A stretch of DNA of 64,000 bases from Scyliorhinus canicula (GCF_902713615.1 NC_052162.1:125574653-125638652), one strand, 5' to 3'. Counted from the stretch's first letter, positions 170 through 60,399 are shown. Made by a program: numbers and translations. Notes: generated from the sequence alone by a model not told the origin.

Positions 170-761
170 TCAATTGTGAACTTGTCGGTGTCTCAGCAGG
201 GACGAGGAAACACAGAATCCCTTCCCACACTGAGAGCAGGTGAACTAGCCTCTCCCCAGTGTGAACTCGCTGGTGTCTCCGCAGGCTGGATAACTCAGTG
301 AATCTCTTCCCACACTGAGAGCAGGTGAACGGCTTCTCTCCTGTGTGAACTCGCTGGTGTTTCTTCAGGCTGGATAACTCAGTGAATTCCTTCTCACACT
401 GAGAGCAGGTGAACAGCCTCTCCCCTGTGTGAACTCGCTGGTGTTTCTTCAGGCTGGATAACTTAGTGAATCCCTTCCCACACTGAGAGCAGGTGAACGA
501 CCTCTCCCTGGTGTGAATTCGCTGGTGTTTCTTCAGGCTGGATAACTGAGTGAATCCCTTCTCACACTGAGAGCAGGTATATGGCCTCTCCCCAGTGTGA
601 ACTCGCTGGTGTGTCTTCAGGCTGGATAACTCGGTGAATCCCTTGTCACACTGAGAGCAGGTGAATGGCCTCTCCCCAGTGTGAATGCGTCGATGAGCTT
701 CCAGCTCTGATGGAGTTCTGCATCCCTTCCCACAGTCCCCACATTTCCACCGTTTCTCCAT
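170..761 (-). pseudogene. C2H2 ZNF gene A: 6 intact fingers plus a 7th finger broken by a +1 frameshift
   Basis: ATG at 761 reads [13 protein letters not shown]...HRRIHTGERPF, followed by CSQC..HQRVH repeats. GAGAGGCTAGTTCACC at ~246 has one base more than the canonical GAGAGGCCGTTCACC. The ancestral stop (cf. gene D) is at 170-172, a span of 592 nt = 3n+1. The shifted frame stays open to the window edge, which explains its absence from the ORF track. Confidence 0.85.
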
Positions 762-1345
762 ATTTTGGGTTTCCTCGAGTCTCTCCAGGTCGGCCAATCA
801 GTTGAAGCCTCGTCCACACACAGAACACGTGTGCAGTCTCTCCCCGCTGTGAATGGTGTGGTGTTTTTCAGGCTGTGTAACTGGTTAAAGCTCTTTCCAC
901 AGTCAGTGCTCTGGAACACTCTCATTTGGGTGTGTGTGTCTCGGTGCTTTTCCAGTCACAATGATGTTTAAAATCTTTTGAAGCCAACAGGTTGGGCAAA
1001 CATTACTCCTTCTAGATAATGGCCAATGAAACGAGTGACTGTCAGAACGAGACGTGACGTTTAAGATTTCTGTCTGTAAATCCCATCCTTTTAACATCCT
1101 GTAAAAGCAGTTTACAAAAGACATGACAGTCAGTACAGGATAGAAATTCAGAACTGATTATTTTAAATTCTCTGGAACATTCTTTCGTCTCTCGTTCCCC
1201 AAAAGCTGTAAATCTCCATCCCACACACTCTCCCTCCATTCTCACTCTGCTGTATCTAATATTCACCCTCCCAATTCTCCTGAAGGTTCTGATTCAGGCT
1301 GATTGACAGATCCCTGCTCACTGCTTCCTGTCCTGGACACAGAGA
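762..1345 (-). other. Conserved ZNF 5' leader module of gene A (small exon, ~170-bp intron, fossil fingers, uORF)
   Basis: Homologous to 10660-11227, 23207-23818, 38805-39387 and 59741-60295. Has a GGAGG|GTGAAT donor, ACTGAC branch-like site, TTTACAG acceptor and degenerate finger codons. Confidence 0.8.
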
Positions 1346-1747
1346 TCATAACAAACAGGAGCTGTAGTCGGCCATTCAGCCCATCGAGCCTGCTTAACCA
1401 TTCAATGGGATCAGTGGCCGATCTACCTCAGCACCATTTTCCCACACTATCCCCCATCTCCCTCACTGTCTTCAAAATCCAGAAACCTGTCAATCTCTGT
1501 CTTGAAAATACTTGATGACTGAGGCCCCACAATCCTCTGGGGCAGAGAATTCCAAAGCTTCACTACATTGTCTTTAAATTCATTGAAGATCCCGGCCCCG
1601 TGTCACTGCCGTGTGGAGTCTGCACATTCTCTCCATGTCTGCATGGGTCTCACCCCCACAACGTAAAACGATGTGCAGGGTCAGTGAAGTGGCGATGCTA
1701 AATTTCCTCTTAATTGGAAAAAAGAATTGAGTCTTCTAAATTTTTTT

Positions 1748-2010
1748 TTAAATAAATGAATTTACGGGATTTGGGCGTCGCTGGTTCGACCAGTATTTGT
1801 TGCCCATCCCGAGTTGCCCTTCAGAAAGTGGTGGTAAGTGGCCTCCTTGCACACCCACTGTGCTGTTAGCGAGGGAGTTCCAGGATGTTGTCGCAGCGAC
1901 AGTGAAGGAACGGCGATATCTTTCCAAGTCGGTCTGGTGAGTGACTTGGAAGGGAACCTCCAGGTGGTGGGGTTCCCAGGTATCTGCTGCTCTTGTCCTT
2001 CTAGATGGCA
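1748..2010 (-). mobile_element. 3' end of a CR1/L2-group LINE
   Basis: Same 3' tail as 24130-24420 and 39780-40040. Confidence 0.7.
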
Positions 2011-2084
2011 GTGATCGCTTTGCTGAGCACTTTCGGTCTGTGCGCATTCAGGACCCTGACCTTCCCTTTGCTCGCCATTTTATT

Positions 2085-2310
2085 TATTTATATAAATTTG
2101 GAGTACCCAATTCATTTTTTCCAATTAAGGGACAATTTTACCGTGCCAATCCTCCTACACTGCACATCTTTGGGTTGTAGGGGCCAACGCCAAGCAGACA
2201 CGGGGAAAATGTGCAGACTCCACATGGTCATTGACTCAGAGCCGGGATCGAACCTGGAACCCCGGCGGCATGAAGCAGCAGTGATTAACCACTATGCCAC
2301 CATGCTGTCC
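2085..2310 (-). mobile_element. HE1/V-SINE-like tRNA-derived SINE
   Basis: tRNA-like head and V-domain core, flanked by near-identical ctcgccatttt/cttgccatttt TSD. Confidence 0.8.
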
Positions 2311-2789
2311 CTGCTTGCCATTTTAACACAAGACCCTGCTCCCACGCCTTCCCTTGACTTGCCCTTGCAATGTTCCATTGACGCTCAACACAAACTGGAG
2401 GAACAGCATATCATCCTCCGGTTAGGAACACTACAGCCTTTCAGTCTCAACATCAAATTCAACAACTTCAGATGATTAGCTCTACCCCACCTCAACCCCT
2501 TTAGTTTCATTCTATTTCATTTGAACTGTCTATTACCTTTTATTTCTTTCTTGTCTTTCTTATATATATTTCCCCCTCACTCTTTCCCCCTATCTTATCC
2601 CCCCTTTCTTTACCTTTTGTCCCATTTGCTTCCCCTCTTTTTCTCATTTCCCTCTCTCCCATCCATGCCACCCTCCCCCCACATCTACATCTGTCACAGC
2701 TTACCCTCTGATTTTAGTTTCTCTGCTGTTTCGGTCTTTCTCACCTTTTATTCGCTCTGGGGACTGCCATTATAATCTTTATTTTATTA

Positions 2790-3078
2790 ATAATCTTTAT
2801 TGTCACAGGTAGAATTACATTAACACTGCAATTAAGTTACTGTGAAAAGCCCGTAGTCGCCACATTCCGGCACGTGTTCGGGTACACAGAGGGAGAATTC
2901 AGAATGTCCAAATGACCTAACAGCACATCTTTCGGGACTTTTGGGAAGGAACTGGAGAACCCGGAGAAAACCCACACAGACACGGGGGAAAAGTGCAGAC
3001 TCCACACAGTGACCCAAGCCGGGAATTAAACCCGGGACCCTGCGCTGTGAAACCACAATGCTAACCATTGTGCTGCCC
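2790..3078 (-). mobile_element. V-SINE variant with alternative 3' tail
   Basis: V-domain plus the tail also seen at 26520-26695, 46083-46380 and 52220-52310. Confidence 0.75.
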
Positions 3079-3467
3079 TTCTTTTTCCTTTGTTTCTGTA
3101 CTTATGACTGATCTTTCTTTCCCTCGCCCTATGGTATAAATGTCTCCCACTTTCTATCCTTTTTAGCTTTGACAAAGGGTCATCTGGACTCAAAAACAAT
3201 AGCTCTTTTCTCTCCTCACAGGTGCTGCCAGACCGGCTGAGAATTTTCCAGCATTTTCTCTTCTGGAAATATATAATGTAGCTACAGTACGATGTTACAC
3301 AACTAGAAATAATAATAAATGTACTTTATTACAGAACCAATAATATATCTAATCTGTACAATATAACAACATTACACTTATTTCAATTAATTTACTGTCC
3401 CTTTACATGTCAGCCATCTCCTGGGGAAACCAGCCCTTTAATTGTGAACACTAGAAAATAGACCGTA

Positions 3468-4535
3468 TGGGGCAGCAAGGTAGCACAGTGGTTAGCCCAG
3501 TTGCTTCACAGCTCCAGGGTCCCAGGTTCGATTCACAGCTTGGTTCACTGCCTGTGCGGAGTCAGCATGTTCTCCCCGTGTCTGTGTGGGTTTCCTCTGG
3601 GTGCTCCAGAGAACATTACAGAGCAGTACAGGCCCTTCAGTCCTCGATGTTGCGCCGACCTGTGAAACCACTCTAAAGCCCATCTACACTATTCCCTTAT
3701 CATCCATATGCTTATCCAATGACCATACTACTCTCTGAGTAAAGAACCTACCTCTGACATCTGTCCTATAGCTATCTCCCATCAATTTAAAGCTATGTCT
3801 GAGGAAGTGAACAAACAAATATGATAGACAGTAGGGTTATTAATTAGAATAATGTAGATGATAGTGCAGGCCTGAGGGTAGTGAGTTCACAGACAGAGAA
3901 CAAAGGGATGAGCACAACATGGCTAGGAAGGGGGGAGGGGAGCTTTGCCTCGTGGAGGGAATGATGAAAAGGATGCTGGATAACAAGAGGCCCAGGATTG
4001 GGAAATGCGAAGTGAGCCAATCAGGATATATGGCCAGGTCAGAAGGTGTATAGAATGACCTATGGGAAGCTTGTATGCGAATCTTGATGTGATTTGAACT
4101 ATATGTGCTGTGATTTCTTTGTGTTCTCTCTCACTTGCTTTTGGGAGCTTAGAAGACGGCTGTGTGTTCTGAGGTCCTACAAGTGAGTCAGCCTTGCAAG
4201 CTGGTTAAAATAAACAATAATTGATACATGCAAATCCGTCTCAAATTTTATTGAGCCCAGACTGGCAGCAAAAGAATCAGGGATTGTCATGTCCCCTCGT
4301 GCTAGAAATTACCATCCGAGGAAAAAGGCTCCCATGTCCTCCAGTTTCCTCTTCCAATCCAAAGATGTCCAAGTTAGGTGCATTGGCCATGATAAATTGC
4401 TCTTTGTGTGCAAAAAAGTTTCGGTGAGATTACTGGGTTAGGGGGATGCGTTGGGCTTAAGTAGAGTGCTCTTTCCAAGGGCTGGTGCAGAGTCAATGGG
4501 CCAATTGGCCTCCTTCTGCACTGTAAATTCTATGC
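3468..4535 (+). mobile_element. HE1/V-SINE split by a CR1 3' fragment (3610-4338, - strand, TSD CTCCAG)
   Basis: SINE halves at 3468-3609 and 4339-4535. The uninterrupted paralogous SINE is at 40325-40655. Confidence 0.85.
3800..4289 (+). mobile_element. Solo LTR (490 bp, TG...CA, 4-bp TSD TGTC)
   Basis: TGTC at 3796-3799 and 4290-4293, with the host CR1 continuous across the site. CCAAT at ~4017 and AATAAA at ~4209. Confidence 0.85.
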
Positions 4536-4615
4536 ATCGTTTTAGCCAGACAAATAAATGTGTCAAGCTGAGGGAGCAAAGCGTGTCAATGTCTTTAAGA
4601 GAGAGAGAGAGAGAC

Positions 4616-5060
4616 CTGGGCCAAGCTTTGCAGAGTCTGCACCCTCCCTGGATTCACTTCCTTTCCCTTCATTTGCTGCAAGTGACCAATTGAAGGTGAG
4701 AATGAGAAGAGAAATGAAAGTGTTTTACTCACAGATGTTGGGCACAGCAGGATTTTTCAGTCTGTATGAAGCTGAAACGTGGTTAACACAAAGTCCACGC
4801 TCTGATTGGCTGGAGGACCAGAGTCCTTCCGGTCCTCCAACTCTTCTCATTGGTTGCTGGCCGACAGAAAAATTAGGCAACGGATGTGACGTCATGATGA
4901 ATGCCCTTTTGACCTCAATAGGAATAACCGCCACTGCTCATGCGCAGAACTTCCTCTCCTTTGGACATGCGCAGTACCGGCCTGTCCCGCGCCCGGTGAA
5001 TAGAGCGGTTTCTCCAGGCGATTGGCATTATGGGTCATTCAGCCGCCATTAACTCTCGTC
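4616..5060 (-). promoter_or_regulatory. Putative promoter, first exon and 60-bp second exon of ZNF gene A
   Basis: Two CATGCGCAG (NRF1-like) motifs, TGACGTCA at ~4887, several ATTGG/CCAAT boxes and GCCGCCAT (YY1-like). T|GTGAGT donor at 4732 and TTGCAG acceptor at 4676. Homologous to 25639-26230 and 40730-41180. Confidence 0.65.
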
Positions 5061-7714
5061 AAACCAGTCTCCAAACCCCTGGGATTGGGATGAAAGTGGG
5101 AGTGGGGGGCAGTGACCCCATTCCGGACACAAAGTACATGTCACTACGTTTGATTGGGTTTGATTCTGACGTCCCCCGTAGAAAACAGTTTGTTAACTTC
5201 AGACACCTGGGTGACATATTGGGGAGGGCAATAGCTGAGAGTGAAGCTGAACCCAAGAGTCAGCCCTTTCAGGGGAGGAGGATTGTGGGAAAAGCAGAAG
5301 GATAGAGGGATGAATTAGTGTTACAATCAATAGGGAAGGAGTGTGTGGAGGCAGAGACAGAACGAAGCAGTGCTTTCTATCACATGAGCTTGGACAATTT
5401 TATCAAATCATTTGTGAAATCTGGATTTCCAATGTCCCTGTGAAACACCTTGGGATGTTTAATTACATTAAATGTGTTGTATAAATGCGTATTAATCTGT
5501 TATTGAAGGCTGTCACTTGGGCTCCTCCACTACCCAGAACACCAAGTCCCCGATCATTGGCACTCTGATTAACCAGTTTATTCACACAGATCCGACCAGC
5601 TCACCCAATCTCAGTGAATCTGCTGTTCTCGGGCTCCCTTGTAACTCCATCCCTGCTCTCACTGCGCTGAGTTCAAGTGTGAACAAAGCATTTTTGTCTT
5701 TAGATTTTAAGTGTGAGAGGTTAAACCTATCAGGAGGCGATGCATAGGCCGGGTCACTGCTCTCGTCAAAATACAAGACTCAGGAGCTAATGGAGGGCTG
5801 TAAATTATGAAAGATTTTGATGCACATGAAGAATGTTTTCTCTTGTAATGGTAAGACAAAAACTAGAAGCTATGAATGTGAGACAATCTAATCAGGAATT
5901 CAGGAGAAGCTTCTTACCCAGAGAGTGGTGGAAATGTGGAACTTGCCACCTGAAGGATTGGTGGAGGTGAATAAGGCGCGAATGGGACTGAATGGATGAT
6001 TTACACAGGGTTAGCATGGACTCGATGGGTAGAATGGCCTCCTCCACTGACCTAATGACTCTCTGTCGATTGTTACCATCGCTGTAGAGATTGATAACTT
6101 ATTAAATGACAGGAATCTCCAATGGTAGAAAACCATGGACAAAATTTCACATTTTCAAACTTTCACTCAACAAAGCAAATAAAATCGACGCAAACCTGAA
6201 TTAACAGGGACTGGATATTTCACAGAACAAGAGAAATTTCACTTTAATAGTCAGTACAACAAAGATACATTCCATATTGTTCTGAGCCCTCACATTACTT
6301 CCTGTAGAAATGTTGCACCATGGACAATCTCACAGTCTTCCCAATCTCCCTCTGCAATGTCGGATCCCTCACTTCCCACCCAATGGACTTGGCCTTCGAG
6401 TCACTTCCACCAAAAGCCGCATTCTAGCCAAGATCCGTGAATATTGTGAACACCAACAAAGTGCACGTCTGTAAATGCTCCCTGTCGGGTTCTGACGCTC
6501 TTATGTCCCCAGAGACTCCATTTTTGGATCTCTTTAAACAGTATGGTTGGATTTCGCATAACTGAAATAGAAGCAAGTGGTGTTTTCCGATCCACAACCC
6601 CCTGCTCTCCTAGCCTTCAGCTAGCTGTCCTTTCCAACTGTGTAACACACGACGTAACACACGACGTAACACAGTCCCTGCTGTATTCTCAGTGCACTGC
6701 TTCAACACCCAGATCTGTTGGAAGCTCCACGCTCTGTTTTGAACTGCAGGTTTCCTTATTAACTGTGTCTGTCCTTTACCCCCAGCAACCGAACCTGCTT
6801 CAGTGGGACGGAAAGTGTAACTGAATTTAGGATGATCTGTCTATTCAGTCTTGGCTTCTTCAGCTTTACGTTCCCACAGCAACATCAGGTCACATGGTCA
6901 TTTCTTGGAACTGATGACCTCAGAACCAAGAAATCAATTCCTCTCCTTCAGAAGAATCTCCAGTTTCACTTTGGGTCTTAAAGGGTTCATTGCACAAAAA
7001 GTCTTTCCCCAAAATAATAATAAAACTATACTAATAATTATTATTAATCTTACTATTAAATTATTAAAGGTGTTTCCCAAAGTACCTGGGTCATCACATG
7101 CCCTCCCATCCCCAAGGAATAAAGCTTCTGAAGTAAGCATGTTTTCAGAATCCTTTCATGCTACAACACATGTGAACATTATAAATACTGTAACAATGTC
7201 TTTATTACACACTGTTCAGGTAATGGTTTCTCTTTTTCCCATTTTACAATGAAACATATCACATTGGCAATACTATAAGCTTAACCCTGAACAAAACTAA
7301 CCCAATGTGACAATGAGGTTTGAAAGTTCAGCCTGCTCGAGAGTCCCAGTGCTCTTGTCAACAAGAGTTCACTTTACTATTGGTTGATTCACTTTCTTTG
7401 AACCTTCCCAAGAGATCTCCTTGCCCACTCACACAGTCTTCCCAGTTTTCCTTTGTTAAGAGGTTGTGCTTCCTGTTGCTGTAAAAAATTCCGATTGGAT
7501 TGTGGACAGTCTGGACCCTGGGATAAGATTTGTGATGGCTTCAAAGGTTTTCCATATCTGAGGTCAGGTTAACTTGGTCAGGACCACACTGCTGATTGCT
7601 GGCGATCGATCTGGATTTTGAGAGCTGCCTGTGAGGAATTGGACTCTGAGAGGAAATTCCGTCATGTTGCTTTTTCCCTCTGAGTTCAGCAATTTGTGTG
7701 GACGGTGGGATCTG

Positions 7715-9263: not shown

Positions 9264-9269
9264 GGTGAA

Positions 9270-10444: not shown

Positions 10445-11227
10445 TCTTCAATTGGTGACTTGCAACATCCAAAGGAAAAGAAAGTGAATCCAGGGAGGGT
10501 GCAGAGCCTCGATGATTCTGTTCTGATACTGTATAAGTATTGAGGATTTCTGTTGTTCAGTGGAGAAGGTTTACTCCCCGCCGGCATAATCATTAAATGT
10601 TTGAAGTTTGGAGCAGACCTGAAAGAGTGATTCTTTCCGATTCATTCCCGCTAACAGGAGATTTTCAGGTTTGGAAAGAAAGGGATCAGCATGGATCCGT
10701 CAAATTAGTTTGAATCGACACCTTCAGGAGAATTGGGAGGGTGATTATTAGACGCAGCAGAGTGAGAATGGAGGGAGAGTGTGTGGGATGGAGATTTACA
10801 GATTTTCGGGATCGAGAGAGGAAAGAATGTTCCAGAGAAACTAGAATTGTTTGTTCTGAATTTATATCCTGTACTGACAGTGATGTCTTTTGTAAACTCC
10901 TTTTGCAGCCTATTACAATGTGAGATCTATAGACAGAAATCTCACACCAAATGTCACGTCAAGATCTGACAGAGTCACTCAATTCACCGGGACCCGAATA
11001 TCATCGGCTTTTGCATCTCGAAGGAGAAATGACTGGAAAAGCACCGAGACATACACATCCGAGTGAGAGTGTTCCAGAGCACTGACTGTGGAAAGAGCTT
11101 CAACCAGTTACACAGCCTGAAAAAACATTGCACCATTCACAGTGGGAGAGACCGTACGCATGTTCTGTGTGTGGGATAAGTCTTCAACTCATCAGCGATC
11201 TTCGATGGTAACAAGGACACCTGCACC
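10445..11227 (+). other. Diverged ZNF leader module of gene B
   Basis: Exon-2 homologue at ~10463, GGAGG|GTGATT donor at 10741, TTTTGCAG acceptor at ~10908, and fossil fingers. Confidence 0.75.
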
Positions 11228-11238
11228 ATGAAGAAACC

Positions 11239-11904
11239 ATGCGGAAATGTGGTGACTGTGGGAAAGGATTCCAGTCCCCATCTGCACTTGAAACCCATCG
11301 ACGCAGTCACACTGGGGAGAGGCCATTCACCTGCTCTCAGTGTGGGAAAGGTTTTACTCAGTTATCCGCCCTGCAAACACACCAGCGGGTCCACACTGGG
11401 GAGAGGCCATTCATCTCCTCTGAGTGTAGCCAGGAATTCAGTCAGTTATCCCACCTTGTGACACACCAGCGAGTTCACACTGGTGAAAGGCCATTCACCT
11501 GCTCTCAGTGTGGGAAGGGATTCACTGATCCATCCTACCTGTTGATACACCAGCGGGTTCACACTGGGGAGAAGCCATTCACCTGTTCTCAGTGTGGGAA
11601 GGGTTTTAGTCAGTCATCCCAACTGCTAACACACCAGTGGGTTCACACCGGGGAGAGGCCATTCATCTGCTCCGAATGTGGAAAGGGATTCACTGATTCA
11701 TCCGCCCTGCAGAAGCACCGGCGAGTTCACACTGGGGAGAAGCCGTTCACCTGCTCTGACTGTGGGAAAGGATTCGCTCAGACTTCCCAACTGCTGACTC
11801 ACCAGCAGGTTCACACAGGGGAGAGACCGTTCTCCTGCTCTGACTGTGGGAAGAGATTCACTCAGGTGTCCAACCTGCTGAGGCACCAGTGTGTTCACAA
11901 GTGA
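11239..11904 (+). CDS. C2H2 zinc-finger protein B (8 fingers, finger 3 lacks the first Cys), no effector domain
   Basis: 221-aa ORF with TGERPF/TGEKPF linkers. Confidence 0.85.
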
Positions 11905-11969: not shown

Positions 11970-13244
11970 GAATCATATAATCTCTACAGTGCAAAAAGAG
12001 GCAATTTGGCCCATCGAGTCTGTACCGACCCTTGGAAAGAGTACCCCACATAGGCCCATGCCCTGACACTTATCCCCGTAACCCAGTAACCTCACTTAAT
12101 CTCTCTCAGACACTAAGGGACAATTTAGCACCTAACCTGCACATCTTTGGTCTGTGTGAGGAACCCGGAGCACCCGGAGGAAACCCACGCAGATACTGGG
12201 AGAAAGTGCAAACTCCACACAGACAGTCACCCATGACCGGAATTGAACCCGGGTCCCTGGCGCTGTGAACCAGGAGTGTGAACCACTGTGCCACCGAGCT
12301 GTCCCTGTGCCACCAAGCCGTCCCTGGGCCAGAGCCGTCCCTGAGCCACCGAGCCGTCCCTGGGCCAGAGCCATCCCTGTGCCACCGAGCCGTCCCTGTG
12401 CCACCGAGCCGTCCCTGTGCCACCGAGCTGTCCCTGTGCCATCCATGTGCCACCGAGCCGTCCCTGTGCCACCGAGCCCTCCCTGTGCCACCGAGCCGTC
12501 CCTGTGCCACCGAGCCGTCCCTATGCCACCGAGCCGTCCCTGTGCCACCGAGCCGTCCCTGTGCTACCGAGCCATCCCTGTGCCACCATGCCGTCCCTGT
12601 GCCACCGAGCCGTCCCTGTGCCACCGATCCGTCCCTGTGCCACCGAGCCGTCCCTGTGCCATCATGCCGTCCCTGTGCCACCGATCCGTCCCTGTGCCAC
12701 CGATCCGTCCCTGTGCCACCGAGCCGTCCCTGTGCCGTCCCTGTGCCACCGAGCCGTCCCTGTGCCGTCCCTGTGCCACCGAGCCGTCCCTGTGCCACCG
12801 AGCCGTCACTGTGCCATCATGCCGTCCCTGTGCCACCAATCCGTCCCTGTGCCACCGAGCCATCCCTGTGCCACTGAGCCGTCCCTGTGCCACCGAGCCC
12901 TCCCTGTGCCACCGAGCCGTCCCTGAGCTAACATGACGTCCCTGAGCTAACATGACGTCCCTGTGCCACCGAGCTGTCCCTGTGCCACCGAGCCGTCCCT
13001 GTGCCACTGGGCTGTCCTGGTGCCACTGATTCATCCCTGTGCCACTGAGCCGTCCCTGTGCCACTGAGCTGTCCCTGTGCCACCGTGCTGCCCATGTCAT
13101 CGTGCCGTCCCTGTGCCACCGAGCCTTCCCTGTGCCACCGAGCCATCCTTGTGCCAGCGTGCCGACCCTGTACCACCGCGTTGTCCCAGTGCCACCGTGC
13201 CGTCCCTGTGCCACCGTGCCATCCCTGTGCCATCGTGCTGCCCC
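11970..13244 (-). mobile_element. HE1-type SINE with CR1-like tail whose 5' head is expanded into a minisatellite
   Basis: V-domain at 12130-12260, with the head ending in GTGCTGCCCC at ~13243. Confidence 0.8.
12286..13235. repeat. GC-rich minisatellite, 19-bp unit CCGTCCCTGTGCCACCGAG (~50 copies)
   Basis: Directly visible tandem array that accounts for the many repetitive ORFs here. Confidence 0.95.
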
Positions 13245-15140: not shown

Positions 15141-16694
15141 GAGGCAATTAGCCCATTTTCCCCTTTTCCCAAACTCTGAAATGATTCACAGTGATAACCC
15201 TTATTGGTGACAGTGGTTAGATGTTATTCAGTATAAACAAGAGCTGACACAGGCTAATGTCTGAGCAGTAATATCAAAGGGCAGCAGCATTCCCATTACA
15301 CTCTGGGTAGAAGCACCATCTCCAGGTAAATGCTCCCTGCTCTGCCCCAGATGCCATGGTACCAATCAGTGGAATATGTAAAACCTCAACAAATCTCTGC
15401 TCGGGGAATCCCTTCTTATACTTTATTACATCACAAAGTCTATGGAGACTGATTTAACCCAATCATTGCCGAGCTAACATTACAAAACCTGTCATTGAAC
15501 TATCTGTACCCGCCCAAGCCACGTCAAACTCTCAAACAATTGTCTTCCCCACGCTCCGTCCCCGGTACAGGGAGTCAGCATTCCCATGCCAAGCAGTGAA
15601 AACATGGTGGCCTTGACACCCAGGTGTTGTCTAGGATTCCAGGCACTCATTTTCTCTGTCCTCTGGGAGCTGTTTATCTCCCTGTTCCCACACAGCAAAT
15701 CGTCTGTTCTCAGCTCTGCTCGATTTCTGCTGGAGTTTGGTCCCTTTTACACCTTTCGGATCAATAAAACATTTGGTCAGTGAAGACCCAAACCACAATT
15801 TCCCATCCTGTCACCTGTCAACCATCCTTACCCAGAGCGTAATCACAACAGGAATAAAAACAGGAGAAGTGTAACAATCGAATTCAAAATAAATCCACAG
15901 CCAGTCATAGAATTTAATTTAATGTTCACTAATTAGCAAGAAAACCCGAAGTAGGGAGTCTCCCAGGAATCTTACAGTCCGCACTTCGAGGGGGAGGAGA
16001 ACTCTCTCTCCAACCCCTCATTCAATTTCACTCCGTTATTTTCCCGTTCTGTTCTGGCTCCGCCTGGGACAACATCGATTTAATCTTTTCTTCTCCTGAA
16101 GGAGCACCACGAGTTCCAGGTTCCTGGTACATTAGGACAGATGCTTCAAGGAACAGATCAAACATGGATGTAAAAGATTCTCCAGCTCTCTCTTTGTGGA
16201 CAGTTCTTACACAGTATTATTTCTCCCAAGCCCTTCATTGTCCCATTATCGCTTTAATTTCACTCCCACTTTGCCCATGTCCAGTGTGTTTAATTCTATC
16301 CGGATTGTTTTAAAGTCAGTTTCTCTCTGGAGTGTGTGTCAATGTCTTGATGATGTCACAATGGTGTCTCAATCCCCTGGCCACATTAACCATTTCATCT
16401 CCTGCTGTGTCTCCAGTAGCTGTGTGTGTTTGGGACCCAGTCTTCAGTCCATTTCACCATGAATTTAGACTTGTTATTTTTCACATGTAACAAATCACAT
16501 CTGCACACCCACACCGGGATCCCAAAATCATGTCACATATACTTAACTCTCAGATGCGCTGATGAAAATATCAAAGTGAGTGTCTGTCTTTCTGATCTGC
16601 CCTGTTATGGAGCTGATATTTCATGTCGTGGCCGGGCTTTCAAATGTGGATTTCTTTAAAACAAAGTTCATGGGCCAGGATGTAAATATATCTG

Positions 16695-22027: not shown

Positions 22028-23206
22028 TTAGGTATGACCTCGCTCGTGTTTGATCAGGTTGGATGAGGTTCTAAAGCTCTTTGTGCAGTGAGAGCAGCTG
22101 AACGGTCTCTCCTCAGAGTGAATGCGCTGGTGGGACATCAGTAGCTGAGAGCTTTTGAAACCCCTCCTGCAGTCAGAGCATTTAAAGGCCCTGCTCTTGG
22201 TGTGAGTGACATTGTGTTTCAGCAGGCTGGATGATTGAGTGAATCCCTTATCACACACGGAGCAGATGAATGGCCTCTCCCCGGTGTGAAGTCGCTGGTG
22301 TGTCTGCAGGCTGGATAACTGAGTGAATCCTTTATCACACACAGAGCAGATGAATGGCTTCTCCCCAGTGTGAACGCTCTGGTGTCTCTTCAGGTAGGAT
22401 AACCGAGCGAATCCCTTATCACACACAGAACAGATGAATGGCCTCTCCCCAGTGTGAACTCGCTGGTGGTTCTGCAGGTTGGATAACCGAGCGAATCCCT
22501 TATCACACATGAAGCAGATGAATGGCCTCTCCCCAGTGTGAACACGCTGGTGTGACTGCAGGCTGGATAACTGAGTGAATCCCTTATCACACACAGAGCA
22601 GATGAATGGCCTCTCCCCAGTGTGAAGTCGCTGGTGCCTATGAAGGTAGGATAACTGAGTGAATCCTTTATCACACACAGAGCAGATGAATGGCCTCTCC
22701 CCAGCGTGAAGTCGCTGGTGTCTCTGCAGGTTGGATAACTGAGTGAATCCCTTATCACACACAGAGCAGATGAATGGCCTCGCCCTGGTGGGAGAGCTCT
22801 GGTGTCTCTTCAGGTCGGATAACTGAGCGAATCCCTTATCACACACAGAGCAGATGAACGGCTTCTCCCCGGTGTGATATCGCTGGTGTGTCCGCAGGTG
22901 GGATAACCGAGTGAATCCCTTATCACACACAGAGCAGACGAATGGCCTCTCCCCGGTGTGAACTCGCTGGTGGTTCTGCAGGTTGGTTAAATGAGTGAAT
23001 CCCTTCCCACAGTCTGAGCAGGTGAATGGCCTCTCCCCAGTGTGAACTCGTTCATGTCTCCGCAGGTTGCCAATGACAGCGAATCCCTTTTCACACTGAG
23101 AGCAGGTGAAAGGCCTCTCTCCAGTGTGATTGTGTTGATGACTTTCCAGCTGGCACAGGGCTGTGAATCCCATCCCACAGTCCTCACATTTCCATGGTTT
23201 CTCCAT
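22028..23206 (-). CDS. C2H2 zinc-finger protein C (392 aa, 14 fingers, finger 5 lacks the last His), no effector domain
   Basis: ATG at 23206 (MEKPWKC...). The ORF track starts at an upstream GTG. The stop codon lies at the Rex1 junction. Confidence 0.9.
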   Translation of the reverse strand: MEKPWKCEDCGMGFTALCQLESHQHNHTGERPFTCSQCEKGFAVIGNLRRHERVHTGERPFTCSDCGKGFTHLTNLQNHQRVHTGERPFVCSVCDKGFTRLSHLRTHQRYHTGEKPFICSVCDKGFAQLSDLKRHQSSPTRARPFICSVCDKGFTQLSNLQRHQRLHAGERPFICSVCDKGFTQLSYLHRHQRLHTGERPFICSVCDKGFTQLSSLQSHQRVHTGERPFICFMCDKGFARLSNLQNHQRVHTGERPFICSVCDKGFARLSYLKRHQSVHTGEKPFICSVCDKGFTQLSSLQTHQRLHTGERPFICSVCDKGFTQSSSLLKHNVTHTKSRAFKCSDCRRGFKSSQLLMSHQRIHSEERPFSCSHCTKSFRTSSNLIKHERGHT

Positions 23207-37796: not shown

Positions 37797-38804
37797 TCAA
37801 TTGTGAACTTGTTGGTGTCTCAGCAGGGACGAGGAAACACAGAATCCCTTCCCACACTGAGAGCAGGTGAACGGCCTCTCCCCGGTGTGAACTCGCTGGT
37901 GTGTCAGCAGGTTGGATGAATCACTGAATCCCTTCCCACACTGAGAGCAGGTGAACGGTTTCTCCCCAGTGTGAACTCGCTGATGTTTCTTTAGGCTGGA
38001 TGAGTCCGTGAATCCCTTCCCACACTGAGAGCAGATGAACGGTTTCTCCCCAGTGTGAATTCGTTGGTGTACCATCAGGCTGGATAACTCAGTGAATCCC
38101 TTCCCACACGGAGTGCAGGTGAACGGCTTCTCCCCAGTGTGAACTCGCTGGTGTCTCTGTAGGTTGGATAAGTAAGTGAATCCCTTCCCACACTGAGAGC
38201 AGGTTAACGGCTTCTCCCCAGTGTGAATGCGCTGGTGTGTCTGCAGGCTGGATAACTGAGTGAATGCCTTCTCACACACAGAGCAGGTGAATGGCTTCTG
38301 ATTGTGAACAAGTTGGTGTCTTCGCAGGTTGGTTAAGTCATTGTATCCCTTCTCACACTGAGAGCACGTGTACGGCTTCTCTGCAGCATGAACAAACCTG
38401 TGTCTTCGCAGTTTGGACATGTTAGTGAATCCCTTCTCACACTGAGAGCAGGTGAACGGCCTCTCCCCTGTGTGAACTCGCTGGTGTGTCTGCAGGTTGA
38501 TTAACCGACTGAATCCCTTCCCACAGTCAGAGCAGGTGAACGGCCTCTCTCCAGTGTGAATTCGCTGATGTAAATTCAGGCGAGATAACTCAATGAATCC
38601 CATTCCACACTGAGAGCAGGTGAATGGCCTCTCCGCAGTGTGAATTTGCTGATGTAAATTCAGGTGGGATAACTGAGTGAATCTTTTCTCACACTGAGAG
38701 CAGGTGAATGGCCTTTCCCCTGTGTGAATGCGTCGATGAGTCTCCAGCTCTGATGGGAATCTGAATCCCTTCCCACAGTCCCCACATTTCCACCTTTTAT
38801 CCAT
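37797..38804 (-). CDS. C2H2 zinc-finger protein D (335 aa, 12 fingers), no effector domain
   Basis: Intact ORF with 12 CxxC..HxxxH units. Paralogue of gene A. Confidence 0.92.
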   Translation of the reverse strand: MDKRWKCGDCGKGFRFPSELETHRRIHTGERPFTCSQCEKRFTQLSHLNLHQQIHTAERPFTCSQCGMGFIELSRLNLHQRIHTGERPFTCSDCGKGFSRLINLQTHQRVHTGERPFTCSQCEKGFTNMSKLRRHRFVHAAEKPYTCSQCEKGYNDLTNLRRHQLVHNQKPFTCSVCEKAFTQLSSLQTHQRIHTGEKPLTCSQCGKGFTYLSNLQRHQRVHTGEKPFTCTPCGKGFTELSSLMVHQRIHTGEKPFICSQCGKGFTDSSSLKKHQRVHTGEKPFTCSQCGKGFSDSSNLLTHQRVHTGERPFTCSQCGKGFCVSSSLLRHQQVHN

Positions 38805-45056: not shown

Positions 45057-45689
45057 GATGTTTGAAAGTTCAGCTTGCTCGAGAGTCCCAGTGCTGTTGT
45101 CAACAAGAGTTCACTTTACTATTGGTTGATTCACTTTCCTTGAACCTTCCCAAGAGATCTTCTTTCCCAGGTCACACAGTCTTCCCAGTTTTCCTTGGTT
45201 AAGTGGTTGTGCTTCCTGTTGCTGTATAAAATTCCGATTGGATTGTGTACAATCTGGACCCTGGGATAGGATTTGTGACGGCTTCAAAGGTTTTCCATAT
45301 CTAAGGTCAGATTAACTTGGTCAGGAACCACACTGCTGATTGCTGGCGATCCATCTGGATTTTGAGAGCTGCCTGTGAGGAATTGGACTTTGAGAGAAAA
45401 TTCCATCATGTTGCTTTTTCCCTCCGAGTTCAGCAATTTGTGTGGACCCGATTAAAAATCTGTCTAATTCCTCCCTAAATTTACTCAGTGTCCCAGCTCC
45501 ACCGCACTCTGGGGTAGTGAATTCCACAGATTCACAGCCCTTTGAAGAAGCAGTTTCTCCTCAACTCTGTTTTGAATTTGCTACTTCTTATCCGAAGACT
45601 ATTACCTCTCGTTCTCGAATGGCCCACAAGAGGCAGCAGCCGCTCCAATTCTACTTTATCTTTCCATTTCTTTTCTCATTCTGAGGGGA

Positions 45690-46400
45690 CATTGATGACT
45701 TGCAGCAACTGAAGAGAAAGGAAGTGAATCCAGTCTGTGTGTTGCACACATTTTGAGTTCAGTAATGTACATATTTCTGTCTGGCAGTCTGCATGGAGAT
45801 TTTCAGGCCTCTGTCCAGGACCGGGAAGCAGTGAGCATGGATCTGTCAGACTGAATCAGCACCTTTAGAGAATTGGGAGGATGAATATTAGATACAGCAG
45901 GGAGAGAATGGAGGGAGAGTGTGTGGGATGGAGATTTACAGCTTTTGAGGAATGAGTGAGGAAAGAATGTTTCATAGGAACTAGAATTGTCTGTTCGTCA
46001 TTTCCATTTGTTGTACAGGATATTAGATGATCATTTACCGAAAAAAGGACATCAGGATTTGGAAGAGTCACTTGGTTATGAGTGGCGTGGTGGTTAGCAC
46101 TGTTGCTTCGCAGCTCCAGGGTGCCAGGTTCGATTCCCGGCTTGGGTCACTGTGCCGAGTCTGCACGTTCTCCTCGTGTCTGCGTGGATTTCCTTCGGGT
46201 GCTCCGGTTTCCTCCCACAAGTCCCGAAAGGCGTGCTGTTAGGTAATTTGGACATTCTGAATTCTCCCTCTGTACCCAAACAGGTGCCGGAATGTGGCGA
46301 CTAGGGGCTTTTCACGGTAATTTCATTGCAGTGTTAATGTAATCCTACTTGTGACAACAGAGATTATTATTATTATTTATCAGGACCTGAATATCATCAG
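45690..46400 (+). pseudogene. Finger-less ZNF relic F (leader exons only), interrupted by a SINE at 46083-46377
   Basis: Exon-2, exon-3 and intron homologues with the donor mutated to ATGAAT. Shares GGAGATTTTCAGG with gene B. No finger array follows. Confidence 0.7.
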
Positions 46401-51124: not shown

Positions 51125-51385
51125 CAGCAGAGTCCAGCCCCTGCAGTCAAACATGAAGTGGCTGGTGTATCAGGAAGTGGGATGGGTGAGTGACTCTCTA
51201 TCCGCACAGAGAACATGTAAACAGCAGCTCCCCAGTTTGAACTCGCTGGTGTGTCAACAGGCTGGAGGATTGGCTGAATTCCATCCCACTCCTGGAACAT
51301 TTTTCAATGTCCTCTCCCCAGGGCCAGCAGGCTGCCGACTGAGAGAAGCTCTGTCCACAGACAGAGCAGATGAATGGCCTGTCAT
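51125..51385 (-). pseudogene. Degenerate C2H2 finger remnant
   Basis: Minus strand shows RPFICSVCGQSFSQS and HQRVQTGE remnants with indels. Confidence 0.6.
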
Positions 51386-51427
51386 TAATATGTTGATGCT
51401 GGTGTCATATTGATATTGTTCATTCCG

Positions 51428-52830: not shown

Positions 52831-52835
52831 AAGAT

Positions 52836-55800: not shown

Positions 55801-58245
55801 GGTGGCCAGGGAGATAGGAAGAGTGAAGGACAGAGGGGGGAACACGATCTTGGACCCAGCGGGATGAATGGGGTGTGTAAGGAGTTTTATAGTCGGCTGT
55901 GTGAGTCGGAACCCCCAGCTGGGGTGGAGGGGATTCGGTAGTTTTTGGAAGGGTTGGAGTTTTCGAAGGTGGAGGAAGGGTTAGTTGAGACCGTGCAGTG
56001 GAACACAGGGTCATTATATGCAGACGACCTACTCCTATACATTTCTGCCCCATTAGGGGGGATGGCGGAGATTATGCGGATCTTAGGGGAATTTGGCCGG
56101 TTCTTGGGGTACAAATTGAAGATGGGTAAGAGCGAGGTTTTTGTGATCCAGGCGAGCGGGCAGGAGAGGAAACTGGGGGAACTGCCGTTTAAAATGTGGG
56201 AGAGAGTTTCCGTTACTTGGGAATTCAGGTGGCACGGGGATGGGAGCAGTGACATCAATTAAATTTGACCCCGTTAGTCGAACAACGAAGGAGGACTTTC
56301 GGAGATGGGACATGCTCCCGTTGTCACTGGGAGGGTACAGACCGTAAAAATGACGGTCCTCCCAGGATTTCTGTTTGTTTTCCAGTGCCTCCCTATTTTT
56401 ATACCAAAGGCCTTTTTTAAGCGGGTGAACAGGGTGATTTCTGGTTATGTGTGGGCGGGTAAAACCCCGCGAGTAAAGAAGGTGCTGTTAGAGCAGAGCC
56501 GGGGGGGGGGGGGGGGGGGGGGGGGCTGTTAGAGCGGAGCCGGAGGGGGGAGGGGGGCTGTTAGAGCGGAGCCGGGGGGGGGGGGGGCTGTTAGAGCGGA
56601 GCGGGGGGGGGCCTGTTCGAGCGCAGCTGGGGGGGGAGGGGCTGTTAGAGCGGAGCCGGGGGGGCTGTTAGAGCGGGGGGGGGGGAGGGGCTGTTAGAGC
56701 AGAGCCGGGGGGGGGGGGGGGGGTGCTGCTAGAGCGGAGCGGGGGGGGCTGTTAGAGCGGAGCCGGGGCGGGTGGGGGCGGGGGGCTGTTAGAGCGGAGC
56801 CGGGGGGGGGGGGCGCTGCCCACCTTTAATAACTACTACTGGGTGGCAAATACAGCCGTGATCAGGAAGTGGGTAGCAGGGGAAAGGTCAGTGTGGGAGC
56901 GGGTAGAGGCGGAATCATGTAAGGGCACAACTTTGGGGGCATTGGTAATGGCTCCTCTGCCGTTCTCCCCAGCCCAGTACTTCACAAGCCCAGTGGTAGT
57001 GGCGGCTCTGAGAGTTTGGGGGCATTGGTGACGGCTCCTCTGCCGTTCTCCCCAGCCCGGTACTTCACAAGCCCAGTGGTAGTGGCGGCTCTGAGAGTTT
57101 GGGGGCAGTGTCGGAAGCATACGGGAGTGGAGGGAGTGTTGGTGTGGGCTCCAATTTGTGGAACCACTGGTTTGTCCCGGGGAGGCCGGATGGGGGGCTT
57201 CGGAGGTGGCAGAGAGCAGGGATTGAGAGGCTGGGGGATCGAGTTATTGATGGGAGCATTCCATGTTTCGAGGATTTGGTGGAGGAGGAGTTGCCGCGAG
57301 GGAATGGGTTTCGATATCTGCAGATAAGGGATTTTGTGCTAAGGCAGGTTTCGACCTTTCCGCTTCTACCGCCACAGGGGATACAGGACAAGGTAGTTTC
57401 TGGAACGGGGGAGGGGGAGGGGGGAGGTTTCGGAAATTTACAAAGAATTTATCGAGTGGGAGGAAACCCAGTTAGGTGAGCTAAAGGGTAAATGGGAAGA
57501 TGAGTTGTGAGGGGAGGTAGAGGCAGGTCTGTGGGAGGATGCTCTGAACAGAGTCAACACGTCCTCACCATGTGCCAGGCTCAGCCTGATACAATTCAAG
57601 GTGGTTCACCGGGCACACATGACGGTGTCCCGGATGAGCAAGTTGTTTGGGATAGAGGATAGTGTGTGAAGTGAGCAGGAGGGCCTGCAAACCATGACCA
57701 CATGTTTTGGGCATTCCCGAAGCTTAGGGGACACTGGCAGGGATTTGCGGATGTCATATCCATTGTGCTAAAAACAAGGGTGGCGCCGAGTCCAGAGGTG
57801 GCGATTTTTGGAGTTTCGGAAGATCCAGGAGTTCAGGGGGCGAGAGAGGCTGACGTCTTGGCCTTTGTCTCCTTGGTAGCCCGGAGATGGCTATTGTTAG
57901 CATGGAGGGGCTCGAAGCCCCCAAAATCAGGGGTGTGGGTTAGCGACATAGCCGGGTTTCTTAGACTTGAGAAAATTAAGTTCGCCCTGAGAGGATCAAC
58001 GTTAGGGTTCGTTCGCAGGTGGCAGCCGTTTATCGACTTCTTCAGAGAAAACTAAACTTTCAGCAGAGGCAATAAAGGGGGGGGGGGGGGGTGATGGGAT
58101 AGGGGGGAGTTCGGCTATTTTGTGTCTAGAGTAGGTGGGAGCAGTGGGAGATGGAGGGATGTTTACGCACTGAACTATGTTTACATTTGTATTTGTATCG
58201 CTTATTGTTATAAAAGCATAAATGCCTCAACAAAATTTTTTTTTA
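52836..58245 (+). mobile_element. Decayed near-full-length L1-clade LINE (ORF1, EN, internally deleted RT, C-terminus)
   Basis: ORF1 coiled-coil with EDLENS motif, then ITWN, MLQETHL, YADDLLLY and HMFWAFPKL. SINE at 54605-54830 with ~16-bp TSD GGGGGTTGCGATCTT. Confidence 0.85.
56484..56815. repeat. G-rich minisatellite GCTGTTAGAGCGGAGCC(G)n inside L1 ORF2
   Basis: About 11 units visible. Confidence 0.9.
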
Positions 58246-58249
58246 AAAA

Positions 58250-58680
58250 CTTTGCCCCTCGCACCTTAAACCTATGTCACCTGGTAATTGACTTTTCCAA
58301 CCTGGGAAAAAGCTTCTGACTATCCACTCTGTCTGTGCCACTCATAACTTTGTAAACTTTGATCAGGTCGTCCCTCAACCTCTGTCGCTCAAGTGAAAAC
58401 AATCCGAGTTTATCCAACCTCCCCTCATAGCTAATACCCTCCAGGCCAGGGAACATCCTGGTAAACCGCCTCTGTACTCTCTCCAAAGCCTCCACATCCT
58501 TTTGGTAATGTGGTGACCAGAATTGTCGGCAATATTCCATGTGTGGCCTAACTAAGGTTCTGTACAGCTGCAGCATGACTGGCCAATTTTTATACTCAAT
58601 GCCCCGACCAATGAAGACAAGCATGCCGTCTGCCTTCTTAGCGACCTTATCCACCTGCATTGCCACTTTCAGTGATATGT
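58250..58680 (-). mobile_element. CR1 fragment
   Basis: ORF 58277-58753 carries CR1 C-terminal motifs. Confidence 0.85.
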
Positions 58681-59067
58681 TTATTGTAATTTCCCAATCT
58701 ACCACAGACAACTTGCCCCTCAAACCACGACAGTTTCCTTCTGCGAGAAACACCCAGATAAATGAGACAAAAGAACCCTGTAACCACCATAGCCCATCTT
58801 CATGGCAATGTGGCTGCTTTGGGAACTAAATATCTTCCAACATGCAAACACCTTTTCATTCTGTGCTCCTCGTCAAACTTGGAGCCAGGTAATCGCAACG
58901 AGGCTCAGAAATGGTCAGCCCACCGGAGGCAGAGGTGTTAGACCGGCCAGTCCAGCAGAAAGAAACCCTCCAATCATCACCATTCACCAGATGTCAGAAT
59001 GAACAAAATGCAGTCCTGGATGTCAGTGAGAGCAGAAACAATAACAACGGAGCCAACATCTGGAATT

Positions 59068-59740
59068 TATTGTGAACTTGTTGCAGTCACAACAGGTGCG
59101 ATGAATCACAAAACCCCTCCCCACATTGAGAGCAGATGAATGGTCTCTCCCCAGAATTAACTCGCTAGTGTCTCCGTAGTTGGGACGGATCACTGAATGT
59201 CTCCCCTGCTCAGAGCAGGTGAATGGCCTCGTCCAGGTGTGAACTCGCTAGTGTTCCCGCAGGCTGTATGGATATCTGAATCACTTCTCTCACTAAGAGC
59301 AGGTTAACGCCTTCTCCCCAGTATGAACTCGCTGGTGTGTCCGCAGGTTGGATAACTGAGCGAATCCCTTCTCACACTGAGAGCAGGTGAACGGCCTCTC
59401 CCCAGTGTGAACCCGCTGGTGTATCCGCAGGTCGGATGAGTGAGTGAATCCCTTTCTCACACTGAGAGCAGGTGAACGGCCTCTCCCCAGTGTGAACTCG
59501 CTGGTGTATCCGCAGGTCGGATGAGTGAGTGAATCCCTTCCCACACTGAGAGCAGGTGAACGGACTCTCCTCAGAGTGAATTCGCTGGTGTTTCGACAGG
59601 CTGGATAACTGAATGAATCCCTTCCTACACAAAGTGCAGGTGAACGGCCTCTCCCCAGTGTGACTGCGCCGATGAACTTCCAACTAAGATGGGGTCCTGA
59701 ATCCCTTCCCACAGTCTCCACATTTCCATGGTTTCTCCAT
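59068..59740 (-). pseudogene. C2H2 ZNF pseudogene E (~8 fingers)
   Basis: ATG at 59740 (MEKPWKC), TAG in finger 1, a frameshift at ~59452 and several further stops. Confidence 0.9.
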
Positions 59741-60399
59741 GTTTTGGGTCTCCTCTTGTCTCTCCAGGTTGGACAATCAGTTACAGAACACGTGTACGGT
59801 CTCTCCCCGCTGTGAATGGTGTGATGTTTTTTCAGGCTGTGTAACTGGTTAAAGCTCTTTCCACAGTCAGTGCTCTGGAACACTCTCACTCGGGTGTGTG
59901 TGTCTCGGTGCTTTTCCAGTCACACTGATGGTTAAAATCTTTTGAATCCGACAGAAAAGACAAACATTTCTCCTTCCAGATTCAAAGGCCGGTGATATTC
60001 AGTTCCAGGGAATTGAGAGACTGTCTGTAATTCCTCTGCTTCTAATACCCTGTAAAAACAATTTACAAAAGACATCACTGTCAGTACAGGATAGAAATTC
60101 AGAACAGACAATTGTAGTTTCTCTGAAACATTCTTTCCTCTCTCATTCCCCAAAAGGTGTAAATCTCCATCCCACACACTCTCCCTCCATTCTCACTCTG
60201 CTGTATCTAATATTCACCCTCCCAATTCTCCTGAAGGTGCTGATTCAGGCTGATTGACAGATCCATGATCACTGTTTTCTGTCCTGGAAACAAGAGATCA
60301 TAACAAATAGGATCTGCAGTTGGCCATTCAGCCCATCAAGCCTGCTTGTCTATTCTGTGGGATCATTGGCCGATCGATGTCAGCGACATTCTCTGTGTT

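Follow-up and report, generated by a model that had tools for sequence, protein, structure and literature searches.

Fingers-only C2H2 zinc-finger genes of the catshark Scyliorhinus canicula and the mosaic conservation of their 5' leader

The window analysed here is a 64,000-nucleotide (nt) stretch of the genome of the catshark Scyliorhinus canicula (GCF_902713615.1, NC_052162.1:125574653-125638652), free of N runs, in which positions are counted from the first letter. It holds a cluster of five C2H2 zinc-finger (ZNF) genes, designated A to E, whose arrays consist of fingers only and are preceded by a homologous leader with three dead fingers. A sequence-only reading of the window had described this leader as the conserved, stop-locked remnant of an ancestral N-terminus. 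Homology to predicted shark proteins supports the former coding nature of its last-exon part, and conservation of the leader was found to be a mosaic in which two short blocks, i and ii, stand out from a background that differs about as much as synonymous sites do.

Finger arrays and their shared upstream unit

The arrays were located by a pattern scan of the window for tandem C-x2-C-x12-H-x3-H fingers with TGE(K/R)P-type linkers, which returned five C2H2 arrays of 6-13 fingers. Each was then read in the finger frame, giving the following genes (aa, amino acids; ORF, open reading frame).

1..761, minus strand: gene A, MEKRWKC and 6 fingers, with a 1-nt insertion in the linker preceding the last finger (fingers by pattern scan, 176-743)
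11239..11904, plus strand: gene B, intact ORF of 221 aa, 7 fingers and one degenerate finger (fingers 11248-11898)
22028..23206, minus strand: gene C, intact ORF of 392 aa from MEKPWKC, 13 fingers and one degenerate finger (fingers 22034-23188)
37797..38804, minus strand: gene D, intact ORF of 335 aa, 12 fingers, start MDKRWKC (fingers 37803-38786)
59066..59742, minus strand: gene E, dead array with an in-frame stop in the first finger, then more stops and frameshifts (fingers 59323-59722)

Zinc-finger families are the sole Pfam content of these ORFs (zf-C2H2 and zf-H2C2_2, E-values down to 1e-96), which places them among the Krueppel-type poly-zinc-finger genes. The five fingers-only ORFs claimed earlier therefore exist as five arrays, but intact ORFs are limited to genes B, C, and D, gene E being dead and gene A frameshifted. 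In gene A, the shifted frame after the insertion runs past the window start, and the gene is probably damaged. The start sites had been described correctly: arrays A, C, D, and E begin with M(E/D)K(P/R)WKC, while gene B, whose ancestral ATG has lost its frame through a 2-nt insertion, starts at another ATG located 10 nt farther 3'. A hallmark first finger (23 residues) is present in A, C, D, and E, as well as in B after the shifted ATG. The same start occurs in Pristiophorus P0001 and Mustelus P0122, and the hallmark finger was also found in Heptranchias, so that the cluster belongs to a shark and ray fingers-only ZNF family defined by this finger. A gene product identical to the 335-aa ORF of gene D is already recorded in the assembly GCA_902713615.2.

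Self-comparison of the window identified genes A and D as parts of a segmental duplication of about 7.7 kb (1-7703 versus 37626-45447, 87-94% identity), which carries both genes with their leaders, exon 2, and promoter-like regions. Judged from sequence divergence, A and D are the only young pair, the other paralogue pairs being old. Fingers have also been duplicated inside the arrays, in which 84-nt repeats are 77-90% self-identical (85% in gene C). The flanks of two genes have features of their own. A 19-nt minisatellite (unit CTGTGCCACCGAGCCGTCC, about 51 copies, 82% matches) occupies positions 12286-13232 just 3' of gene B and contains spurious long ORFs on both strands. An ORF of 282 aa without a Pfam match (21177-22025, minus strand) lies directly after the gene C stop codon on the same strand, and the 3' flank of gene C has no homology to the other four genes.

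A homologous upstream unit common to all five genes was revealed by self-comparison and alignments. In transcription order, it comprises a 66-nt predicted exon 3, an intron of 168-171 nt, and 309-362 nt of leader at the start of the last exon. Additional elements were found farther upstream of some genes, and two orphan copies of the leader, F and G, lie apart from any of the five arrays.

25759..26023, minus strand: promoter-like region and putative exon 1 of gene C, two TGCGCATG motifs and two CCAAT boxes
4722-4973 (gene A), 40850-41096 (gene D): equivalent promoter-like regions, CpG-containing, two TGCGCATG motifs and one or two CCAAT boxes
4616-4675 (gene A), 25639-25698 (gene C), 40730-40788 (gene D), minus strand: exon 2, 60 nt, AG/GT flanks
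23740..23805, minus strand: exon 3 of gene C, 66 nt, or up to 23818 (79 nt) if an upstream AG is used
1267-1332 (gene A), 10674-10740 (gene B), 39312-39377 (gene D), 60218-60283 (gene E): exon 3 equivalents by alignment
23569..23739, minus strand: intron 3 of gene C, 171 nt (168 nt in A, B, D, and E)
23209..23568, minus strand: last-exon leader of gene C, pre-finger segment (..ITSR.D..EYHRHLNLEGE) and three dead fingers
764-1098 (gene A), 10909-11238 (gene B), 38807-39143 (gene D), 59743-60049 (gene E): leader equivalents by alignment
61097..61269, minus strand: 3' half of orphan copy F, acceptor and pre-finger segment open in frame (RILEEEELQTEISNFTSRSDRVSQFLGTEYHRPLNLEGEMFVFSVGFKRF)
63390-63565, minus strand: 5' half of orphan copy F, exon 3 and block i (defined below)
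45809..46007, plus strand: orphan copy G, exon 3 and block i only

Exon 3 ends in GGGAGG/GTGAAT (exon/intron), and intron 3 has the signals of a spliceable intron, namely GT..AG ends with a GTGAAT 5' end, a TACTGAC branch site, a pyrimidine tract, and a CAG acceptor. The branch site and acceptor are kept in Heptranchias. Exon 2 is located 1.3-3.3 kb farther upstream in genes A, C, and D, where an intron of 70-80 nt separates it from a GTGAGT donor; in gene C, this donor of the putative exon 1 is ATCT/GTGAGT at 25770/25769. Gene B retains a homologous core of exon 2 (10482-10505) lacking the AG acceptor and promoter homology, and for gene E, exon 2 was not found inside the window. There is no ATG in exons 1-2 in the window. 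The homology of A, D, E, and F beyond exon 3 enters a repeat tail with the motif GATGGGCTGAATGGCC (18 occurrences in the window versus 0.7 expected), which is why the alignment of genes B and C ends upstream of exon 3. The sequence-only reading was thus right about shared small upstream exons with splice sites in varying completeness, exon 2 being present in A, C, and D and exon 3 in all five genes. Of the two gene C exons that it had sized at 60 and 79 bp, the former is confirmed, while the latter reaches 79 nt only via the upstream AG and otherwise measures 66 nt.

Origin, age, and mosaic conservation of the leader

All five genes have, as had been noticed earlier, an upstream leader that runs into three dead zinc fingers. 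The fingers are preceded by a pre-finger segment with the pattern ..ESLNS.G.EYHR.LNLEGE across leaders, and the main ATG lies in the linker behind the third dead finger in a strong context (A at -3 and, except in gene B, G at +4). The reading frame of the gene C leader is closed by a TGA at 23243-23245, where gene B has TCA at the corresponding codon. Selenocysteine or read-through at this TGA was set aside as an explanation, given the TCA of gene B and the low conservation of the surrounding segment, the lowest in the leader. Dead finger 3 is 50-60% identical to the live first finger of Cetorhinus P0137. The pre-finger segment and dead finger 1 of gene C matched S. torazame P0127 over 74 aa in a tblastn search (E=5e-6); copy F aligned to P0127 and P0125 of the same species, and the pre-finger segment aligned to P0125, P0127, and P0242-P0244. 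With the 50-aa open stretch of copy F as query, HMMER returned three matches at E<=1e-3 among 1.84 billion representative proteins, namely Pristiophorus P0242 and S. torazame P0243 and P0244, all shark RefSeq "uncharacterized proteins". These three carry ..EEELQTEISNQTSR.DLT.SLNS.G.EYHR.LN.EGK, which recurs across orders. Such homology supports the origin of the last-exon leader as a decayed N-terminal coding region.

The same cannot be said of the upstream exons, which the sequence-only reading had joined to the last-exon leader into one former coding frame. Residues 59-84 of P0243 match exon 2 of genes A, C, D, and B in the frame QLKGKEVNPGRVQTLESL, not TEGKGSESREGADSGKLGP, and exon 2 is joined directly to the pre-finger segment in this protein, skipping exon 3. 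None of the fetched proteins matched exon 3 significantly, whichever frame was used, and this exon was dropped as the candidate origin of the P0244 N-terminus, since the alignment scores fell within the shuffle range. Together with the absence of an ATG from exons 1-2, this confines the support for a former coding frame to the last-exon part. The exons were searched separately; a joined string of exons 3 and 4 was used only for counting upstream ATGs. The leaders of paralogues differ by indels of 2, 5, and 17 nt, none a multiple of three, and RefSeq models differ in the frame that they assign to the same leader DNA. No shark protein of 109-346 aa matched the dead finger 2 peptide in a word search, whose only hit of an allowed length was a tortoise ZNF, while the matches of a whole-protein word search were dominated by generic ZNFs. 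The long acidic N-terminus of P0125 was considered as a family domain and rejected, because it has no Pfam match and its homology to the window is limited to the leader.

The 139-aa leader ORFs of S. torazame end in an alternative 3' exon without any finger. A candidate counterpart is present in the window, 6.3 kb downstream of gene C.

15713..15757, minus strand (that of gene C): candidate alternative 3' exon, ERCKRDQTPAEIEQS followed by a stop and preceded by AG

Its translation is identical to the C-terminus of the leader-ORF isoform P0243 at 14 of 15 residues, and it is probably an alternative 3' exon by which gene C transcripts would skip the fingers. One such S. torazame locus, where a separate 308-aa single-exon product is called inside a 6.4-kb leader-isoform gene, fits a fingers-only main product accompanied by a leader-only side isoform.

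Age was estimated by comparison with one locus from another order, L001 of Heptranchias perlo. Its region 15269-15795 is 76-80% identical to the leaders of genes B-E over about 525 nt and has the same 3' end of intron 3, the same three fingers, and the same TGA in finger 3. Finger 2 keeps both cysteines, finger 1 has one stop, and ACG stands where the catshark genes have the start ATG. Exon 3 and the 5' extension of block i were not found in this locus. Heptranchias belongs to Squalomorphii and Scyliorhinus to Galeomorphii; the split between them, the deepest among living sharks, dates back a few hundred million years. Divergence at near-neutral leader sites amounts to 17-25% between Heptranchias and the catshark copies and to 24-31% among B, C, and the A/D/E group; hence, the paralogues are as old as this split or older. 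The loss of the N-terminus was a single event that predates the split, and every copy inherited it. Heptranchias shares the TGA, which makes this codon an inherited scar. These ages contradict the earlier picture of a rapidly expanding family that converted its N-terminus, as the conversion predates the split, the paralogues differ by 24-31%, and only A and D are young.

Conservation along the leader was measured as identity averaged over deep pairs, that is, pairs of anciently diverged copies. The positions of the two blocks and the identities of leader segments are as follows.

23680..23710, minus strand: block i core of gene C, the 31-nt sequence GGAGGGAGAGTGTGTGGGATGGAGATTTA(C/G)A
1207-1237, 10770-10800, 39252-39282, 60158-60188: block i core in the other gene copies, by alignment
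45910-45940 (plus strand), 63433-63463 (minus strand): block i core in the orphan copies, by alignment
23305..23399, minus strand: block ii of gene C, 95 nt, dead finger 1 helix, linker, and dead finger 2
860-954 (gene A), 11034-11128 (gene B), 38905-38999 (gene D), 59824-59918 (gene E): approximate block ii equivalents, by alignment
Block i, 33 nt from the intronic ATG to TTTACA: 95% identity
Block ii, 95 nt: 93.5% identity, 94.7% to Heptranchias
Branch site to acceptor: 86% identity
Intron middle: 76-78% identity
Pre-finger segment: 72-76% identity
Dead finger 1 body: 75% identity
TGA-to-ATG segment: 68-72% identity, the lowest of the leader

Third codon positions of live fingers 1-2, used as a yardstick, are 76% identical, and 80.7% identical if only codons for the same amino acid are counted. 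The earlier claim that the leader is more conserved than neutral DNA therefore applies to blocks i and ii (93.5-95% versus 76-81%) and fails for the rest; only these blocks qualify as conserved non-coding elements. Nor is the idea of a stop-locked leader supported, since the segment from the TGA to the ATG is its least conserved part and the TGA was inherited. Across all five genes, the longest invariant run spans 44 columns, compared with a maximum of 28 in 20,000 column shuffles. In every deep pair, including all five pairs with Heptranchias, differences are scarcer in block ii than in its flanks (72-79% identity; Fisher P from 1e-4 to 1e-6). The 18 variable columns of block ii are distributed as 6, 8, and 4 over codon positions 1, 2, and 3 of the finger frame, and this lack of codon periodicity indicates that the constraint acts on nucleotides rather than on protein. 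The possibility that block ii is live coding sequence was rejected on the basis of these counts and of a Cys-to-Ser change shared by 5 of the 5 catshark copies. Two CpGs are kept in block ii of genes B, C, E, and Heptranchias, while block i has no CpG. In the catshark, block i extends 5' across the exon 3 donor, where about 87 nt are shared without a difference by A, C, D, and E and three changes occur in B; it has accumulated more changes in the orphan copies F and G than in the gene-linked copies.

Effectors, possible functions, and rival explanations

No KRAB, SCAN, BTB, or other Pfam effector domain was found in the ORFs, the leader translations, or the leader ORFs of related RefSeq proteins. 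The screen was extended to the 150 longest same-strand stop-to-stop ORFs (at least 47 aa) in the 4.3-6.8 kb upstream of the five genes, which gave only dead-finger matches and two matches at chance level. Within these Pfam scans of ORFs, leader translations, and upstream ORFs of at least 47 aa, there was no KRAB box (PF01352) that would assign the genes to KRAB-ZNFs, nor a domain typical of SCAN-, BTB/POZ-, or ZAD-ZNFs. The window ORFs have only 3-4 residues ahead of the first finger, leaving no room for a 28-aa FiNZ domain. The fingers-only, effector-less character of the products proposed by the sequence-only reading is borne out to this extent, and the case that it had named as refuting, a distal exon with a known effector, did not turn up among the upstream ORFs of at least 47 aa. 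A Heptranchias model, P0121, joins a 261-aa ORF located 5 kb upstream (L001 10001-10783) to the finger exon (15734-16669) at an AG 20 nt before the position of the catshark ATG, which is ACG in the Heptranchias copy. The N-terminus of P0121 has no Pfam domain and ends in a transmembrane-like tail, and the model is probably a chimeric prediction.

Several ways in which the blocks could act were considered. The window had no Rfam matches, and exon 3 with intron 3 folds no better than shuffled sequences (z 0.24). RNAalifold predicted a 14-bp helix in block ii of six leaders, UGUGACUGGAAAAGC pairing with GCUUUAACCAGUUACA, which covariation did not support (term +3.11, unfavourable, with changes that break pairs), although the power of this comparison is low as the block is near-invariant. 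By Rfam, fold z-score, and RNAalifold, then, the leader does not appear to be a structured RNA or a member of a known RNA family. A conserved upstream ORF was also rejected, because the positions and lengths of upstream AUGs vary and none is common to all paralogues: the spliced leaders contain from one (gene C) to seven (gene B), and an upstream ORF beginning with MFV is missing from B and C. The MEGECVGWRF ORF, which starts at a strong-context ATG in block i, lies inside intron 3 and extends over only 15-65 codons, and its ATG is absent from Heptranchias.

Block i is most likely an element controlling splicing or the choice of start site, since it covers a donor and the adjoining start of a short intron, where runs of G are frequent; G triplets are known to enhance splicing from within introns. 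Block ii most likely serves as a primary-sequence binding platform, in RNA or DNA, that would regulate expression across the family. A footprint of 95 nt would suit a many-fingered protein, and self-regulation of ZNF families through feedback has been discussed for FiNZ genes, where it would be negative, and for KRAB genes (PMC10547256). One could go further and suppose that this piece of dead fingers was exapted by the common ancestor of living sharks or earlier to control the whole family, for instance by docking a poly-ZNF of the same family in negative feedback, with block i governing the form of the transcript. We regard this proposal as decidedly unlikely; if true, the fingers-only genes would be regulated as one unit via their own fossil coding sequence.

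With moderate confidence, we interpret the locus as an old shark cluster of fingers-only C2H2 genes in which the leader is the decayed N-terminus and two blocks are under purifying selection at the nucleotide level. Transcription would start 2-3.5 kb upstream at a promoter of the CCAAT/TGCGCATG type, seen for A, C, and D, and short non-coding exons would be spliced onto one large exon whose first 310-360 nt are the decayed acidic pre-finger segment and three fingers. Translation would begin at a strong-context AUG that arose in the linker ahead of the hallmark first finger, giving a product of 7-13 fingers and nothing else. A single loss of the N-terminus before the deepest split of living sharks would have been inherited by all copies; most of the leader, including the in-frame TGA and the upstream AUGs, would have drifted at an approximately neutral rate since then, while purifying selection on nucleotides would have held blocks i and ii. 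The anatomy of the genes, their homology, their age, and the mosaic of constraint are demonstrated parts of this account, while the roles of the two blocks are proposals. Several observations weigh against this interpretation. Block ii is equally well kept in the dead gene E and in the intact genes, which fits a recent death of E or a cause besides selection on its expression. The limits of the blocks were set post hoc, and the Fisher P values are optimistic for this reason. The comparison between orders includes one locus. That exons 1-3 are used, where transcription starts, and that intron 3 is removed are predictions from sequence signals and RefSeq models of another species, and the S. torazame models P0125 and P0127 read through intron 3, which may often be retained.

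The leader could also be a pure relic, unselected over its whole length, in which a slow substitution rate of sharks, the low CpG content of the blocks, and gene conversion between paralogues mimic conservation. Most of the leader (68-78% identity) is indeed no better kept than synonymous sites, the TGA and upstream AUGs look either inherited or variable, CpG is absent from block i, and block ii survives in dead gene E. Yet gene conversion is impossible between species, and block ii is 94.7% identical between Heptranchias and the catshark against 73-79% in its flanks; the invariant run is longer than in all 20,000 shuffles, two CpGs have persisted in block ii of B, C, E, and Heptranchias, and the orphans F and G are more changed in block i than the gene-linked copies. 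We therefore consider a pure relic unlikely. The idea that the leader is still wholly or partly translated as an undescribed shark effector module, through an upstream start, splicing around the dead fingers, or read-through, draws on the S. torazame and Pristiophorus RefSeq ORFs that pass through leader exons (P0242-P0250, P0125, P0127), on the recurrence of the pre-finger segment across orders, and on the open pre-finger frame of copy F. It is very unlikely in view of the window exons 1-2, which have no ATG, the separate stops and 2-, 5-, and 17-nt indels of each paralogue, the different frames of RefSeq models over the same DNA, and the aperiodic substitutions in block ii. Moreover, the 139-aa ORFs finish in a fingerless 3' exon, the pre-finger segment recurs in only 3 of 1.84 billion representative proteins at E<=1e-3, and a word search with dead finger 2 returned no counterpart among shark proteins of 109-346 aa. 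Finally, an effector domain might be supplied by a distal exon outside the shared unit or shorter than the 47-aa cut-off. P0121, with its junction just before the lost start codon, would be an example, and the ORF screen covered lengths of at least 47 aa. This explanation is extremely improbable, as the N-terminus of P0121 is distant, domainless, and chimeric-looking, self-comparison revealed no conserved upstream block besides exons 1-3 and transposable elements, and the ORF census contained no effector family. In addition, the gene families absent from cartilaginous fishes were found to be enriched for the KRAB box domain in the whale shark genome paper (PMC8455134).

Surroundings of the cluster and comparison with known systems

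The genes are interspersed with repeats. A long interspersed nuclear element (LINE) at 47127-49536 (plus strand) encodes an endonuclease (213 aa, Exo_endo_phos) and a reverse transcriptase (463 aa, RVT_1) in different frames, and older related fragments occur at 17927-19035 and 58277-58753 (both minus strand). The 52-58 kb stretch has a strong GC skew (0.36-0.43) and holds two tandem repeats, a G-rich 29-30-nt repeat GGGGGGGGGGGGGCTGTTAGAGCGGAGCC in about 10 copies (56512-56818) and an 83-nt two-copy repeat (56932-57107). Remains of two or three zinc fingers, isolated, interrupted by stops, and without a leader, lie between the LINE and the G-rich region (51153-51392, minus strand).

Like the KRAB-ZNF clusters of tetrapods, the catshark cluster consists of tandem fast-changing C2H2 arrays among transposable elements, with in-array duplication, dead copies, and segmental duplicates. 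Unlike them, it has no KRAB exon or other effector that we could find, its ORFs start in the linker just before the first finger, and its 5' exons are non-coding. It resembles the FiNZ genes of cyprinids in being part of a lineage-restricted, very large non-tetrapod poly-ZNF family with a family-specific 5' part (PMC10547256). The FiNZ sequence, which is acidic and cyprinid-restricted, is a translated 28-aa N-terminal domain, whereas the 5' part of the shark genes appears to be untranslated and is conserved as nucleotides rather than codons. The human gene ZNF252 of the 8q24.3 cluster offers another parallel, since its former N-terminal effector exons stay in the transcript out of frame or broken by stops, and fingers are found in untranslated sequence (PMC2865497). 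ZNF252, however, is a single gene with decayed KRAB boxes (PMC2865497), while the shark case involves a whole old subfamily and the decayed part is made of fingers. It also differs from ZNF252 in that part of the decayed shark N-terminus is under nucleotide-level constraint across shark orders. In mammals, ZNF274 and TRIM28 mark the 3' ends of ZNF genes by docking in live finger-coding sequence. The shark leader would similarly provide a family-wide cis sequence in finger-derived DNA as a possible docking site for a family regulator, but this candidate site lies in a dead finger of the 5' leader.

A literature search found no paper on the shark fingers-only family or its leader. Nevertheless, the cluster does not reveal a new kind of system, contrary to the suggestion that it was the best candidate for an undescribed one, because fingers-only poly-ZNF genes are an ordinary class and the product of gene D was already on record. 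Cartilaginous fishes have very large zinc-finger families without KRAB-ZNF genes, which raises the question of what such proteins do in place of recruiting repression through a domain of their own, and of what controls them in turn. For one old subfamily, the window yields a clean gene model in which the 5' leader is the decayed N-terminus of the genes themselves. The region of interest is thereby narrowed from an entire "stop-locked leader" to two short blocks kept since the deepest split of living sharks, which would neatly illustrate the regulatory reuse of dead coding sequence.

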